Shown here: positions 11,803 to 20,411 of the stretch, in pieces
Numbering within the stretch: the stretch's first letter is position 1
Layout: every line of letters begins with the position of its first letter
Virus record (IMG/VR): IMGVR_UViG_3300043399_000877
Span: 62,001-126,000 of that record
Length of the DNA stretch: 64,000 nucleotides
Strand: one strand, 5' to 3'
The notes under the pieces: generated by a model
The model's input: only the letters and a program-made list of their open reading frames with translations
The model's database searches: none
What the model was told of the DNA's origin: nothing
Translations under genes and position numbers: made by a program

Positions 11803-13362
11803 GCGTAGAACCCTGCTGTCAGGACGAGAAAAACTGGATTCACATTCGGAGTCCGCAATGTTTCGAAACTGCGGAACACTTCGAACGAGATGTTCAGGAA
11901 GATGATTATCACTTCTACTTTTATCTCGAAATCCACTATTGCCGCGAGTGCGGCCGTGTCCTGCGACCGATGCGAGCGGAACTGTTCGAAACCGAGTATG
12001 TTGAGGACATCATCAGCACCGCAGAAGAACGCATGGCTGAGATCGAAAATCATCTAGACTGGGTGGACACCCATGTTCAGTCCATGCCGATTCCCGAGGG
12101 AAACCAGAAGTTGACCTACAATCTTCACAATCGGATTAACGAATTAAGTGAAACAATTCGTGACGAGTTAACCGACTTAGGTATTTTACGGGCTTGACAC
12201 TGTCCTGCACTTCTGCTAGACCGTGCTGGTAACAACGGAGAAGACAGATGGCAGCTTATGTGATCTATCACCGCGACACCACTCGGCTGGCACGGCGCGC
12301 CAACGGTGACGAATATTTTGCATCCGAGGCGGCAGCCAAGCGGCACCGCACTCGCTACCTGAATGACCAGGACTACCTGATCAGTGAGGCAGTCAACTTT
12401 CACGACAACATCGAACAGGTTGTGGCCCGGGTCAACATCCGGACCGGACAGACCTACATGGAGCCGGTCAATACTCCGAACTATATGAGCCCGGCTTCGG
12501 AAGCATATTGGCAAATGTGAGGACCGATGGGATATTATACCGATTACACTGTTGAAGCCCGTGGCTTCAAAAAACAAGACGAAGCCGAATTTTTCGCCTT
12601 CAAACTGGTGCAGAAAGGCGTTGTCAACAGTTCCACGCGGTTTCATTATGGCCAACTGGGTTCAGATTTTTCGGCTCAGTTCGAAGTTCACGAAACCAAA
12701 TGGTATGACTACGCGGATGACCTCCGGACTGCCAGCCTCTGGTTCCCGCACATCACGATCGATGTCGAAGGGTCCGGAGAGGAGAACGGCGATCAATGGC
12801 GCCACCGTTTCAGAAACGGTGAACACGAGCGGGTCGAGGCGGTCATCAGCTTTCCGGACTTTAAGGTGATCCGGTGAGCGACTATCGTGTAAGAAAATTC
12901 CAATACGACGAACCGGACGGGTTTTGCCGTATGGTTTGGGTTCGCTGGGGCAGGACCCAGGAAGAGGCTGATCGTATTGTGCGAGAGGACACCGGAGCAG
13001 ACCCCGAGTGGACTGTCCAGGTTGATGAGTATCGTGGTCCATACTGGCAGCACCGAACCGGGCTTGATGAGTTCGATCTCAAAAAATTTAGTTCGGTAGT
13101 TTAACAAAAAAACCAAAATAGTTGTTGACGGCAAGAACGTTAGATGCTATAAACAACTGGTAAACAACGCAAAACAGGAAAGCAAATGCAAGGTTACAAG
13201 ATCGTTTTTGAAAACACGGCTGGCGCGGCTGTCGACGAGCTGGACTTCGGAAACATCCGCAAGGCCCGCGAAGTTTTTGAAGCCCTGGTGCTGAAAGACT
13301 TTGCTCGGGCGATCCTGATGCAGGAGGACGGCACCACGCTGGACTCCAAGGTGCGGGCATAA
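11799..13362 (+). CDS. Five small hypothetical proteins (11799-12197, 12248-12520, 12527-12877, 12874-13104, 13186-13362)
   Basis: SDs and promoters at 12194 and 13125. The last gene (58 aa, MQGYKIVFE...) was found by manual translation. Confidence 0.7.
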
Positions 13363-13374
13363 CGCCCGCCATTT

Positions 13375-13451
13375 GGGGGATTAGCTCAATTGGTTAGAGC
13401 GCCGGACTCATAATCCGTAGGTTGCTGGTTCAAGTCCTGCATCCCCTACCA
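13375..13451 (+). tRNA. tRNA with CAT anticodon, probably Ile2 (lysidine type) rather than Met
   Basis: Cloverleaf: GGGGGAT/ATCCCCT acceptor stem, CT-CAT-AA loop, TTCAAGT T-loop, encoded CCA. The T arm resembles that of bacterial Ile2. Confidence 0.9.
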
Positions 13452-13455
13452 AAAT

Positions 13456-13538
13456 GGCCCCGTGGTGGAATGGTAGACACTGAAGACTTAAAATCTTCTG
13501 CCAATGGCGTGCCGGTTCGAGTCCGGCCGGGGCTACCA
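13456..13538 (+). tRNA. tRNA-Leu(TAA)
   Basis: GGCCCCG/CGGGGCT acceptor stem, CT-TAA-AA loop, long variable arm, encoded CCA. Confidence 0.93.
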
Positions 13539-13623
13539 TGTCTTTGACGATCACATCAGTCTTCGACGGAGGATCTTCAAAATAAAGTAAATATTGAAGC
13601 CCGTGGTGTGATCTTCTAAGACA
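13539..13623 (+). ncRNA. Candidate structured small RNA within the tRNA cluster
   Basis: TGTCTT/AAGACA and GATCACATCA/TGGTGTGATC closing helices, with an internal CTTCAA/TTGAAG hairpin. Confidence 0.4.
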
Positions 13624-13626
13624 TTC

Positions 13627-13656
13627 GGTTCCTTAGCTCAGCTGGATAGAGCAACT
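13627..13656 (+). pseudogene. 5' remnant of a tRNA (Arg-like)
   Basis: GGTTCCTTAGCTCAGCTGGATAGAGCAACT gives the 5' acceptor strand and D arm, then breaks off into GATAAATAC. Confidence 0.75.
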
Positions 13657-13674
13657 AGATAAATACTTTAAGAC

Positions 13675-13749
13675 GCCTCCGTGGTGAAAGGGATATCACA
13701 CGGGTCTTCTAAACCCAGGTTAGAGGTTCGAATCCTCTCGGGGGCGCCA
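13675..13749 (+). tRNA. tRNA-Arg(TCT)
   Basis: GCCTCCG/CGGGGGC acceptor stem, CT-TCT-AA loop, AGAGG-TTCGAAT-CCTCT T arm, encoded CCA. Confidence 0.9.
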
Positions 13750-13763
13750 ATTAAAGTATTAGT

Positions 13764-14564
13764 ATGAAAAAAGAAATATGTATTAAATGTGGTGGTCAGT
13801 TTTCGTTAAAAGGTGGAAACTTTTCTAGACATGTGAAATCCTGCAATGGCGTTAAAAAGGCCACTGTTCCAAAAGGAACCTGCGTCCATTGTTTTGAGGT
13901 TTTTGATTTAATTGATAAGCCCAAAGGTTGGATGGCAAACCATACCAGATGGTGTTCAAAAAATCCAAAACGAGAAGCGTATGTCGAAGCATTGATTTCG
14001 GGCAGCGGTAAAAACAATGTTACTCTCATGAACGAAAGCCGTAAACGGTCTGGCATCGTGAATCAATATGCAAAAGCAAAACTTTTAGGAAAACCGATAC
14101 CAGAAAACCCCGGAAAGGGAAAACCCGGGGTTCTTGGAAGAAGACATTCTGATAAAACTCGCGCCATCATTAGCCAAAAAGCCTTAGCTTCGAAACACCG
14201 ACGGTTAAAAAAGAATACTATATGGTATAATGGAGTTCTTTTGGATTCATCTTGGGAAGTCGAACTAGCCAAGAGACTGGACTACCTGGGTATCCGATGG
14301 ACTAGGCCCGATCCAATCCGGTGGACAGACGGAGACGAGGTCGAACACAACTACTTTCCGGACTTTTATTTGCCGGATTATGATTTATATCTAGATCCTA
14401 AAAACCCGCAAGCGATGAAAAGCCAACAGGAAAAACTGAAATACCTGTTGACGCAACACAAGAACGTCGTTATATTGCGAACATTAGGCGAGTGCAGGAG
14501 TTTTAGCCTGCAGGGACCGCCACCGTCATATCCCCACTTGTGCGTGGAAGGGGGTATGGTTTAA
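13764..14564 (+). CDS. Putative free-standing homing endonuclease (Zn fingers, NUMOD3-like motif, PD-(D/E)xK domain)
   Basis: CxxC...HxxxC motifs, GRRHSDKTRAIIS, and LDSSWE...YFPDFYL...YLDPK; AT-rich relative to neighbours. Confidence 0.75.
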   Translation: MKKEICIKCGGQFSLKGGNFSRHVKSCNGVKKATVPKGTCVHCFEVFDLIDKPKGWMANHTRWCSKNPKREAYVEALISGSGKNNVTLMNESRKRSGIVNQYAKAKLLGKPIPENPGKGKPGVLGRRHSDKTRAIISQKALASKHRRLKKNTIWYNGVLLDSSWEVELAKRLDYLGIRWTRPDPIRWTDGDEVEHNYFPDFYLPDYDLYLDPKNPQAMKSQQEKLKYLLTQHKNVVILRTLGECRSFSLQGPPPSYPHLCVEGGMV

Positions 14565-14634
14565 CAGAAACGCTCTGTGACTCCGACCTTTGCCAGTTAT
14601 AGGATGTCGCATAAAGGTTGAAACTTGGCTTAAT

Positions 14635-14666
14635 AAGAAGGTGGTATGGCAACATACCACCTTCTT
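14635..14666. terminator. Perfect 14-bp hairpin with GCAA loop
   Basis: AAGAAGGTGGTATG-GCAA-CATACCACCTTCTT. Confidence 0.75.
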
Positions 14667-14727
14667 CCTTGACTCGCATGTCTACGTCTGCTAAGATGAC
14701 AGAACAGACACAACCCAAGAGGACAGA

Positions 14728-15339
14728 ATGTCTAAGAAAAAGATGACCGGGCTGCACACTGGGACCATCGAACGTTGGATGAAACAGTTTGCTGGTGATC
14801 TGGATCTCGAGCCTCATTTTGAGAAGTTTCGGACGCTGTCCGAAACTCGTGCGCGACACGCTCGTGAAATCCATGCACTGGATACCGAATACTCACAAGG
14901 TGATATGACCAAACGCGAATACCGTGAACGCAAGAATCCGTTGGACTCGGTTATGAAGGGCATCAAGCCTCGTATGCGAAAACAATTTGACGTCATGGTC
15001 TCGCATATCCTGCTCAAAGGCATCGATTGCCGTTGCTATATTTGCGGTGACCGACTACAGGGTGACGAACCGCACAACCGTGATCATGTGTTTCCCAAAG
15101 TGATGGGCTTCGGCATCGGCGGAAATATGATGCCGGCCCATTATGAATGCAACCAGAACAAAGACAGCCGCTTCCCGTATGAATATGAAGTGGAATTGGC
15201 GGTTGCAGCATATGAGCATGCCGGGATGCCGTTTCATCCGCGTATGGGGCGGCGGAGTATTGCTGAATACGATCAGCGATACTGGGACATCATTCGTCGG
15301 CAAACCAGCTTCGAATACATTCATAGGATTGTGGAATAA
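14728..15339 (+). CDS. HNH-domain protein
   Basis: CYICG...RDHVFPKVMG...NMMPAHYECNQNK. Confidence 0.75.
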   Translation: MSKKKMTGLHTGTIERWMKQFAGDLDLEPHFEKFRTLSETRARHAREIHALDTEYSQGDMTKREYRERKNPLDSVMKGIKPRMRKQFDVMVSHILLKGIDCRCYICGDRLQGDEPHNRDHVFPKVMGFGIGGNMMPAHYECNQNKDSRFPYEYEVELAVAAYEHAGMPFHPRMGRRSIAEYDQRYWDIIRRQTSFEYIHRIVE

Positions 15340-16692: not shown

Positions 16693-17922
16693 ATGAAGAC
16701 ATACTTAGTAGGTGGGGCTGTCAGAGACATGCTGATGGGCATGGACCCCAAAGATCGTGACTATGTGGTGGTGGGCGCATCGGCTGCACAGATGATTGCC
16801 GATGGTTTTGAGCGCGTGGGCGCAGAGTTTCCGGTGTTCCTGCATCCCGGAACCGGCGAGGAATATGCGCTGGCAAGAACCGAGCGCAAGACCGGTTCCG
16901 GCTACACGGGCTTCTCGACGGAGTTCGGTCCAGACGTGACGCTGGAGCAAGACCTGGCGCGGCGTGACCTGACCATCAACAGCATTGCCTATGACGTGTC
17001 CGGTTACGGCGGATATATCGATCCGTTCGGTGGCGAAGATGACATCCGGAATCGTATGCTGCGGCATACTTCGGATGCCTTCGCAGAAGATCCGGTTCGT
17101 GTGCTGCGGCTGGCGCGTTTTCGTGCCAGACTGGGGCCGACCTGGGTCATTGCACCCGAGACAGTTGAACTGATCTCCAAGATGGCCAAGAGCGGTGTGC
17201 TGACAGAGCTGACTGCTGAACGCGTCTGGAAGGAAATGAGCCGAGCGCTGATGGAACCGTATGCGCGTCTGTTCTTCGATACGCTGATGGAGACCGATTC
17301 GCTGCATGTGATCTTTCCGGAAGTGTATCGACTGAAGACTGCTCTGGAAGCGCGTCGTTGGCATCCGGAAGGTGACGCTTACGAGCATACCATGCTGGTG
17401 CTGTCGCAGGCTGTGGAGTTTGGATTCGATCTCGAGACTCGTATGGCTGCACTGGTTCACGATTTCGGCAAGGCAGCAACTCCGCGAGATCGGTTGCCCC
17501 GACATCACGGGCACGAGGTCACAGGTGTTCCGATTGTTGAAAACTTCTGCAAGCGGCTGCGGGTGCCCAGCACCATGCAGACCAGACTGCCGCGAGTGAC
17601 CAGATACCATATGCACATGCATCGTCTGGATGAGCTGAAATCGTCTACCGTTGTTGACATGTTCGAACGGATGGACGCCTTCCGGGATCTTCCGGTAGTC
17701 ACTCTGCTGTGGCAACTGGCTATCTGCGACGAGCGTGGCAGACTGGGTTCGGAGAATGCCGAGTTCGGACAGCTGTCCCAGATCCTTTACATGCAAGACG
17801 CAGCCCGTTCTGTTCGGTTTGTGGACGTGTTCCCTAGCGGTGAACCGGATCACACAAAAATCCGATCCGGTATGCACCGAGTCCGTGTGGCGGCTGTCCA
17901 AAATCAACGAAACTCCAAATAA
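16693..17922 (+). CDS. cca: Multifunctional CCA-adding tRNA nucleotidyltransferase with HD domain
   Basis: YLVGGAVRD, DRDYVV, EYALARTERK, DLARRDLTIN, EDPVRVLR, HPEGD..EH, LVHDFGK. Confidence 0.95.
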   Translation: MKTYLVGGAVRDMLMGMDPKDRDYVVVGASAAQMIADGFERVGAEFPVFLHPGTGEEYALARTERKTGSGYTGFSTEFGPDVTLEQDLARRDLTINSIAYDVSGYGGYIDPFGGEDDIRNRMLRHTSDAFAEDPVRVLRLARFRARLGPTWVIAPETVELISKMAKSGVLTELTAERVWKEMSRALMEPYARLFFDTLMETDSLHVIFPEVYRLKTALEARRWHPEGDAYEHTMLVLSQAVEFGFDLETRMAALVHDFGKAATPRDRLPRHHGHEVTGVPIVENFCKRLRVPSTMQTRLPRVTRYHMHMHRLDELKSSTVVDMFERMDAFRDLPVVTLLWQLAICDERGRLGSENAEFGQLSQILYMQDAARSVRFVDVFPSGEPDHTKIRSGMHRVRVAAVQNQRNSK

Positions 17923-17934
17923 GAGAACACCGGA

Positions 17935-20411
17935 ATGAAATGGAATTCTCCAATCCGTTCTGACATAACGGTTAAAAGAAAATACGCATGGATTCCAACA
18001 CGGATGGATGATGGCACCTTCTTGTGGTTCGAATACTACTACGAGCGTTGGGTGTTTCATCTGCTCCCAATGGATCGTAGTTTTTGGGAAGTGGCCGGCA
18101 GAACTGTCGACCACCCTAATGATCCCGGAACTGGTAGCAAAACGTCATAACCTCCAGCGTCAAAAAACATCTTGACGCTGGCTGACAGACAGCGTATAAG
18201 AGCTGGAGAACAACGGGAGACAAGGCTATGAGCTACGACATGCGACACGGCGGCCCTTACGACAGGGGCTCTGCTGACAGTTACTATCGGCGCAGCCCGG
18301 AACCGCACTACTACCGTGGCGGCGCGGGCAGGTGGGAAATGGTGCCTGAAGCCCAAATGACGGCGGCTGAAATCGAAGCCTACCTGGCCGGTTACCGTGA
18401 AAACGACGACTTCAAGGACTGGGGTCGTGATGAAGACTAACACGGTGTTCCGTATAATCAACCGAGAGACTGGGGAAGTCGATGTTTGCACTTCGGCGGC
18501 AGAGGTGGTGGAGCGGATGCTGGGTCGGCGGTATAAACAGTATATCGTGATCAAAAGTGAAGAAGACGAACACAGAGAGCGAATTCGTGACGTGCTGGTT
18601 CCGATAACCAGTCCAGACGTTCGATATCTTGAACTGCAACTGAACATTCTGTAAAGGAGAAGACTATGGGTCTTGACATGTATCTGAACGCCAGCCGTTT
18701 CCTCTGGGACCTGGGTGATGATCCGGATGTGAAACTGGCCGTTGATATCGGCGCCATGTTTCCGGAACTCAAGGGCAAGCGGGCTCGTGAGGTCAGCACC
18801 GAACTGTTCTACTGGCGCAAGGCCAACGCAATCCACAAATGGTTCGTGGATACCGTCCAGGAAGGGCGAGACGACTGCGGCTACTATCCGGTCGAGCTCG
18901 AGCAGTTGGCCACCTTGCGGGACCTTTGCCGGCTCGTGCTGGGGAACCCGGACAGCGCCAGTCGTCTGTTGCCCACGCAGGGCGGGTTCTTTTTTGGCGG
19001 GACCGACTACGACGAATATTATTTCCAGGATCTGGAACGAACCGTCCAGTTCTTGGATGAATTCCTTCCTGAATATACCGATGATGCGAGCAGCCCTTGG
19101 CGGCGCTGGCAAATAGAATATCACTCCAGCTGGTGACAATCATCGGTGGCGGGCTTGACACTGGCTGTTGAGCCCGCTATAAGCAGATGAACAACAGGAG
19201 ACGCAGATGGGAACTCGAAGCCTAACTCGATTCATGGAGGACGGCAAACCGATTGTTTGCCTTTACGGCCAGTATGATGGGTATATTACCGGTCACGGGC
19301 GTGAGCTTGCCAACGTCCTGCGTGACGGTCGTATGGTGAACGGCCTTCGCGGTGGCACGGAAAAAGTGTTTAACGGTGCCGGCTGTCTCGCTGCCCAGGT
19401 GACGGCAGCATTCAAAGACGGTCCCGGCGGATATTACCTTCACTCACCGGATTCGGAAGACGAGGAATACACCTACGACCTTGAGGTCCGTATGACACCG
19501 GGCCGTTTTGGTCCCGAGCCCCAGCCGGAGATCCAGGTGTCGGTCCGTTCTTACGGTGACCTCTTGTTTACCGGACCGCACAGTGAGTTCGTTCAATGGG
19601 CATTTTTGGAGGAGAGCGATGATGAAGAAGACACTGAAGAAAATCGGTGATGCCGTGTGGTGGGTGTTGACACTGGCCTACTACTCTGCTATGATGCTGG
19701 TGTGACATGCATCATTTGGTAAACTTGCTTGCAGAGGCAGGCGTGACGCGACCCGAGCATGTTCGCTCAATCGCGCAAGTGATCCTGATGTCACAAATGG
19801 ACCGCAGTCTGGTTGAAGCTGCTGAAGAAATCAGCAACGCCGCAGACGGCGATATCATCAAAATCTGGCAACAGGTTTTTGGAGGAAACTGATGAGCGAT
19901 ATCGATCCTAACAACGTCTATTCCGATGTGGAAATCACCCTGCGGCTTCCGCGTGTGATCACTGCACTCGACTATCACGAGTTTGGAGAAATCCAACGAA
20001 TGATTGAGGAGAAGCTGGGCGTCACGGGTGTTTACGTCACCGAAGTAGGATTCATGGCACCGGAGTATGTGGGCCTAATCCACGTGAATACCGAAAGCCA
20101 CAATCAGCTGGTGATGGAACTGGAACGGTATTACCAGGAACAGGAATAACGGGATGCGGACCTACTACTTCAATCAGTGGGGGCACCATGTCCCCACTGA
20201 GGTAGGTCATTATCGTATGATTCCGGAATGGATCGACGTCGACAACCAGATGTGGAGCGAGCCCTACCATTTGTATGGTGACTTGGATACCGGGATACCC
20301 GTAAACAGTCCGCAGCACTTTATGCATCTGAGATCGATAAAACTATTGACAGAGCTCTGCAATCTTGCTAGGGCTCAAGAGCAACAAAAGGAAACAGCCA
20401 TATGCGTTTGA
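17935..20411 (+). CDS. Eight small hypothetical early proteins (17935-18150, 18228-18440, 18430-18654, 18666-19136, 19207-19650, 19707-19892, 19892-20149, 20154-20411)
   Basis: SDs and promoters at 18172, 19155 and 19667. 18666 (MGLDMYL..YWRKANAIHKWF) and 19207 (MGTRSLT..QYDGY..GHG) resemble widespread phage hypothetical families. Confidence 0.7.

Follow-up and report, generated by a model that had tools for sequence, protein, structure and literature searches.

A predicted nuclease cassette within a phage tRNA-Arg(UCU) gene carries a divergent, intact tRNA-Arg(UCU)

Why should a phage tRNA cluster hold a broken tRNA gene, a complete tRNA gene and a nuclease-like open reading frame (ORF) in immediate succession? 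We examined this question in a 64,000-nt window (bases 62001–126000) of the 381,886-bp IMG/VR jumbo-phage record IMGVR_UViG_3300043399_000877, whose genome carries 42 tRNA genes, including duplicates and odd genes. All elements of interest lie on the + strand. A preliminary description had noted a tRNA 5' half ending at a late-promoter motif, a complete and divergent tRNA-Arg(TCT), and an endonuclease gene 14 nt further on, and had proposed a mobile unit of promoter, immune tRNA allele and nuclease that cuts the resident tRNA gene. Our analysis confirmed each of these elements at its position and found the arrangement to be more complete than described.

The region begins with tRNA-Met(cat) (13375–13451) and tRNA-Leu(taa) (13456–13538), both called by ARAGORN and by Rfam (68.8 and 56.7 bits), followed by an 88-nt structured spacer (13539–13626; MFE −30.9 kcal/mol, z −3.9 against shuffles) that is not part of the cassette. 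The tRNA fragment at 13627–13656 shows a 7-nt acceptor strand, TA, a perfect 4-bp D stem and a GGATA D loop, runs three bases into the anticodon stem and then diverges. Its exact first 27 nt occur in 73 IMG/VR contigs and begin a tRNA-Arg(TCT) in every full-length case, two contigs ending before the tRNA is complete. The fragment is therefore a real stub of a tRNA-Arg(UCU) gene, the same isoacceptor as its intact neighbor. One IMG/VR contig (L081; such handles denote individual contigs or loci below) has the same order of Met, Leu(taa) and Arg(tct) with an intact Arg.

The preliminary description missed the other end of the broken gene. A search allowing G-U pairs located its last 16 nt (T-stem 3' strand, acceptor 3' strand, discriminator G73 and CCA) at 14507–14522, inside the end of the nuclease ORF. 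The acceptor 3' strand pairs with the acceptor 5' strand of the stub, and an intact natural allele in contig L023 matches both remnants exactly, all 30 nt of the stub included. The resident gene is thus split by an insert of ∼850 nt. The 3' remnant is also present in L093, the only close relative; because divergence along this region is patchy, the apparent conservation of the stub between the window and L093 supports no inference about selection on the stub.

At the left end of the insert lies GATAAATA (13658–13665), a 7-of-8 match to TATAAATA, which appears to be the T4-type late-promoter consensus; ATAAATAC lies at 13659–13666. In this genome, 12 of 25 TATAAATA copies fall in the roughly 6% of DNA that is intergenic and lie 0–56 nt upstream of ORF starts, suggesting that the phage probably uses such promoters. 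The motif is further degraded in L093, which has GATAACTA, and compared with L149, which has nearly the same stub, the window has lost about 15–20 nt between the anticodon stem and the motif. It is best seen as a decaying cassette promoter, and read-through from the upstream tRNAs may now drive expression.

The complete tRNA-Arg(tct) at 13675–13749 was called by ARAGORN, scores 57 bits against the 29-bit Rfam threshold and adopts a cloverleaf MFE fold. It is only about 60% identical to the stub-type gene: its T4-like D arm and its acceptor differ, while its anticodon loop and T loop are the same. Its two differences from the L093 copy both keep base pairing. An exact search for this tRNA in IMG/VR found none. 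AGA is the commonest Arg codon in the phage (29%), and the genome keeps a second tRNA-Arg(UCU) at genome positions 359085–359160, with a canonical D arm and a different loop and D loop.

The ORF, which starts 14 nt later (13764–14564, 266 aa), encodes a protein with zinc knuckles at aa 6–27 and 40–64, a NUMOD3-like motif at about aa 125–141 and a PD-(D/E)xK-like domain at aa 151–245. It is followed by an HNH ORF (14728–15339). Contrary to what the preliminary naming as a NUMOD3/PD-(D/E)xK endonuclease might suggest, the window protein itself gives no Pfam hit, NUMOD3 (PF07460) included, at E up to 1, although it matches PHROG endonuclease and resolvase families. A word-index search found more than 1000 relatives, almost all unnamed, a few of which carry NUMOD3. 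In an alignment of 34 relatives, a C-x2-C...H-x3-C knuckle (C40, C43, H60, C64) and E165, D200, D211 and K213 are invariant and a NUMOD3-like G-x-x-H-[ST]-x-x-T motif is kept; 12 of the 34 hit Pfam NUMOD3, the best at 3e-6.

The AlphaFold2 model (pLDDT 83.7) gave top structural matches for aa 151–257 that are nearly all PD-(D/E)xK nucleases: TnsA (Z 7.9), Bax1 (7.2), VRR-NUC (6.9), Vsr (6.7), the homing endonuclease I-Bth0305I (6.0), Hjc (4.7) and I-Ssp6803I (4.2). Because Z scores below 8 can reflect a common arrangement only, and Foldseek on the whole model gave only weak rows (E at best 0.01), the predicted fold rests on these matches and the conserved motif together; a PDB sequence-profile search gave nothing meaningful. 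The gene is single-copy in the genome and under purifying selection (dN/dS 0.22 against L093). GC content falls to 39–45% across the ORF against about 55% in the flanks, pointing to a foreign origin. The normal family C-terminus ends at residue 249, but in this lineage a deletion removed the stop codon and most of the T arm, so that the last 17 codons read through the tRNA remnant.

We next asked whether this architecture recurs. In the contexts of three independent homologues (89%, 56% and 50% identity), the gene lies 14–19 nt after a tRNA-Arg(TCT) that is itself preceded by a truncated tRNA stub and a TATAAATA-type motif. A profile scan of IMG/VR gave 80 loci, of which 57 were non-redundant. 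Among these, 45 have a tRNA-Arg(UCU) gene or a look-alike directly upstream, 36 have an exact TATAAATA within 300 nt upstream of the nuclease ORF (at this same left-end position in the loci inspected), 32 have a D-arm-like stub outside any called tRNA, and 13 have an acceptor-complementary strand at the ORF end. Roughly 3–4 of those 13 could be chance matches, but eight loci (L094, L102, L106, L124, L127, L137, L149, and L177) show a full T arm, a matching acceptor strand and CCA, and a few others keep partial remnants. About a fifth of family members show no tRNA-Arg link.

The junctions are the same everywhere: the stub ends after anticodon-loop positions 33–35, and on the other side the nuclease stop codon lies in or next to the variable loop. 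Positions 34–43 or thereabouts, that is, the anticodon and the 3' strand of the anticodon stem, are therefore missing, indicating a replacement rather than a clean intron-like insertion. The anticodon loop is the hot spot. In L145, the tRNA-Arg(UCU) upstream of a nuclease homologue carries a group I intron at loop position 34/35 (Rfam 74 bits), and in L146 a 50-nt insert sits at the same place.

Comparison of loci indicates that the unit is mobile. In the pairs L137/L135, L102/L094, L102/L099, L160/L162, and L127/L137, blastn similarity is confined to the stretch from the stub start to the CCA of the 3' half, whereas flanks of 1–2.5 kb are unrelated. In L137/L135, identity per 30 nt rises from background to 80–97% at the stub start and falls again at the CCA, with the insert more alike than the tRNA halves, as homing into different alleles with short co-conversion tracts would give. 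The neighboring tRNAs differ between loci, and for the window, nucleotide similarity to the other loci also stops inside the ORF.

Relatives of the L137 lineage, found through a flanking gene, mostly lack the nuclease, and where they have a tRNA-Arg(UCU) it is an intact gene, mostly of the canonical D-arm type. None of the 73 loci with the intact stub-type allele holds a nuclease homologue, and the T4-like spare type occurs in 18 nuclease-bearing loci but in 0 of 151 nuclease-free loci. Spare type also clusters on the nuclease tree (25 changes against 32.2 in shuffles, as low in 0 of 200). In most loci the stub has the canonical TAGCTCA...GGATAGAGC D arm and the spare a T4-like one, whereas in the clade L151/L156/L160/L164/L172 the stub is T4-like and the spare is canonical with a CTTCTAC loop. 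This fits a target-versus-immune-allele logic, but it is a qualitative, manual reading, as the stub register in an automated identity comparison was unreliable.

No empty-site relative of this particular phage was found, which we regard as a sampling limit rather than evidence against the homing interpretation. Megablast against cultured phages gave only a tRNA hit, the nuclease as a single query in IMG/VR gave nothing, and relatives of a flanking gene were too distant (39% identity or less) and not syntenic. Searches for the spacer–stub junction in IMG/VR and for two downstream patterns in JGI metagenomes were blank, and comparing the flanks of filled loci with the 73 loci carrying intact alleles returned only generic tRNA matches. 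Look-ups of flanking proteins returned only nuclease-bearing copies, and all three assemblies of the phage carry the gene, so it may be fixed and no longer moving here.

Taken together, these observations support, with fairly high confidence, the interpretation of the locus as a free-standing homing-endonuclease cassette that lives inside tRNA-Arg(UCU) genes of large phages, and they strengthen the structural claims of the preliminary description. We infer, in the absence of enzymatic data, that during co-infection the nuclease cuts an uninterrupted tRNA-Arg(UCU) gene of another phage in or near the anticodon arm, and that the break is repaired from the cassette-bearing genome, with the tRNA halves and neighboring DNA serving as homology, which copies the cassette in and deletes the target site. 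The spare tRNA would keep AGA decoding, so that insertion costs the phage little, and must itself escape cleavage. Cleavage, target position, immunity and timing of expression all remain inferences. The spare has the same anticodon loop as the presumed target, so specificity would have to lie in the stems or the D arm, where we found no clean discriminating base, and the second tRNA-Arg(UCU) of the genome must be resistant if the enzyme is active. In this phage the copy is old: both junctions carry secondary deletions, the promoter motif is imperfect and the normal stop codon is lost, yet the nuclease ORF and the spare tRNA are still conserved.

Other explanations are less likely. The cassette may have arrived by homing while the nuclease is now kept for another job, such as excluding competing phages' markers, remodeling or amplifying the tRNA cluster as T6 SegB does (PMC13096335), or acting on RNA together with the adjacent tRNA. 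The presence of the gene in all three assemblies, the low dN/dS despite eroded junctions and a weakened promoter, and the family members that are not next to tRNA-Arg are in keeping with this view, but it does not explain why the spare is always the same isoacceptor as the broken gene or why homology between unrelated phages ends at the tRNA ends, and it is compatible with homing rather than an alternative to it. We consider it unlikely as the main explanation.

Two further readings are very improbable. If the insert were an intron-like element whose flanking halves are spliced into a working tRNA, the spare would be incidental; both halves do persist with matching acceptor strands in several lineages, a true group I intron sits at the same position in L145, and ARAGORN in intron mode can join the halves of L124 across the nuclease. 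However, no group I match (RF00028) appears in 13000–15000 even at E up to 10, nor in L124 at the gathering threshold, the anticodon and the 3' strand of its stem are missing in every split locus inspected, most of the T arm is also absent in the window, and the tRNA and the ORF almost fill the insert, leaving no room for a ribozyme core. Accidental decay of a tandem duplicate tRNA-Arg, with an unrelated nuclease gene landing nearby, would fit the fluidity of phage tRNA clusters and the badly degraded stubs seen elsewhere, but the 3' remnant lies downstream of the nuclease rather than beside the stub, the same junctions recur in many unrelated contigs, and stub, spare and nuclease move together.

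A broader possibility, which we advance only tentatively, is that this large, unnamed family of phage nucleases acts as a natural home-and-rescue gene drive aimed at one tRNA isoacceptor, with each clade cutting one sequence type of tRNA-Arg(UCU) gene and carrying another as the rescue, the roles being reversed in one clade. Such a contest over cleavage sites may have driven the spare tRNAs into unusual shapes, including D-armless tRNA-Arg look-alikes that standard tRNA finders miss, and may have favored a group I intron at the same site.

Homing endonuclease genes normally avoid harming their host by hiding in self-splicing introns or inteins or by sitting between genes. Here the element appears to break an RNA gene outright and to pay for this with a working, differently sequenced copy, which would be a third solution; we found no description of a homing cassette that splits a tRNA gene and brings a substitute in the open-access literature searched. 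It would also explain why phage tRNA clusters hold pseudo-tRNA stubs and duplicate isoacceptors, how tRNA genes move between unrelated phages and why odd tRNA-Arg variants exist, and it names a family of more than 1000 currently hypothetical proteins and predicts a compact nuclease specific for a tRNA gene.

The nearest described case is T4 SegB, a free-standing nuclease in the T-even tRNA cluster next to tRNA-Arg, with a predicted late promoter, which recognizes tRNA-gene sequence and is inherited preferentially together with neighboring tRNA genes (PMC2330249; PMC2988022). SegB, which the preliminary description had invoked, is a fair analogy but not a relative. It is a GIY-YIG enzyme, whereas the window protein has a PD-(D/E)xK-like domain and no GIY-YIG hit in Pfam or PHROG; it recognizes the T-psi-C motif common to many tRNAs without isotype preference (PMC2330249; PMC13096335), a 2026 study having found it near tRNAs of all isotypes (PMC13096335), whereas the present family is tied to tRNA-Arg(UCU); and it sits between genes, whereas this cassette sits inside the gene and brings a substitute.

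I-Ssp6803I, encoded in the group I intron of cyanobacterial tRNA-fMet, has the restriction-endonuclease-like fold and a target in the anticodon region of a tRNA gene (cited in PMC3984707), but it is intron-encoded, so that gene function is restored by splicing rather than by a spare gene, and it is a small protein without zinc knuckles or NUMOD3 and without detectable sequence similarity to the window protein. The layout of L145, with the nuclease homologue just downstream of the intron-bearing tRNA-Arg(UCU), matches the published collaborative-homing arrangement (PMC3984707), whereas the window has no intron and the interrupted gene is abandoned and replaced.

Aeromonas phage phiWae14 has a full-length homologue annotated as hypothetical. 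Tequatrovirus ORF ELT1_157 and its relatives in T4-like coliphages share the zinc-knuckle and NUMOD3-like module (47% identity over 100 aa) and lie between tRNA-Asn and tRNA-Arg(UCU), with the 3' end overlapping the tRNA-Arg start, but the C-terminal nuclease domain is of the DUF559/RAP type and we saw no stub and no split gene there. Finally, the inferred logic of a nuclease that destroys a needed gene while its element carries a cleavage-resistant working copy resembles what appears to be the logic of synthetic cleave-and-rescue and home-and-rescue gene drives, which appear to have been devised independently.

The tRNA-Met plus tRNA-Leu(taa) pair at window 13375-13538 is present twice in the genome, the second pair lying at genome 19781-19944 (minus strand), with 82% identity over 158 nt. 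The 88-nt spacer between tRNA-Leu(taa) and the stub (window 13539-13626) folds into a long stem with two inner hairpins (MFE -30.9, z -3.9), and an inverted-repeat-bounded spacer also follows the paralogous tRNA-Leu(taa) near genome 19.5-19.8 kb; the 88-nt spacer may be a small stable RNA of the tRNA cluster. At genome 17688-17762 (minus strand), 11837-11910, and 19599-19674, all outside the window, the phage also encodes a tRNA with anticodon CTA, which would read amber, and two tRNA-like genes with irregular anticodon loops.

Immediately after the cassette (window 14635-15339) come a 14-bp hairpin (14635-14666), a sigma-70-like TTGACT-17-TAAGAT (14669-14697), and a 203-aa HNH endonuclease ORF (14728-15339). 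The ORF may be a second selfish nuclease, and it is also present in L093, the only close relative. An ORF with PolyA_pol, RNA-binding, and HD domains, like a CCA-adding tRNA nucleotidyltransferase, lies close to the tRNA genes at about window 16729-17922 (coordinates converted from locus L182).

Many cassettes carry tRNA-Arg look-alikes in place of a cloverleaf spare, as in the nuclease-bearing locus L140 (about 2405-2487) and also in loci L124, L129, L118, L107, and L166. These look-alikes have an acceptor stem, a CTTCTAA or CTTCTAC anticodon arm, and a T arm, but no normal D arm, and they have an extra segment after the anticodon arm; ARAGORN does not call them.

Two related loci have insertions at the same anticodon-loop position of a tRNA-Arg(UCU) gene. 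In L145 (2150-2426), a phage tRNA-Arg(UCU) gene has a 203-nt group I intron in the anticodon loop (Rfam RF00028, 74 bits), and the nuclease homologue lies about 75 nt downstream. In L146 (2334-2459), the insert is only 50 nt long, too short for a group I intron, and TATAAATA and the nuclease follow the tRNA.

The hypothetical protein ELT1_157 of a Tequatrovirus, Escherichia phage ELT1 (locus L180, 2492-3157), shares the zinc-knuckle and NUMOD3 module but has a DUF559/RAP-type nuclease domain. It lies between tRNA-Asn and tRNA-Arg(UCU), about where the T4 review places segB, and it overlaps the tRNA-Arg start.
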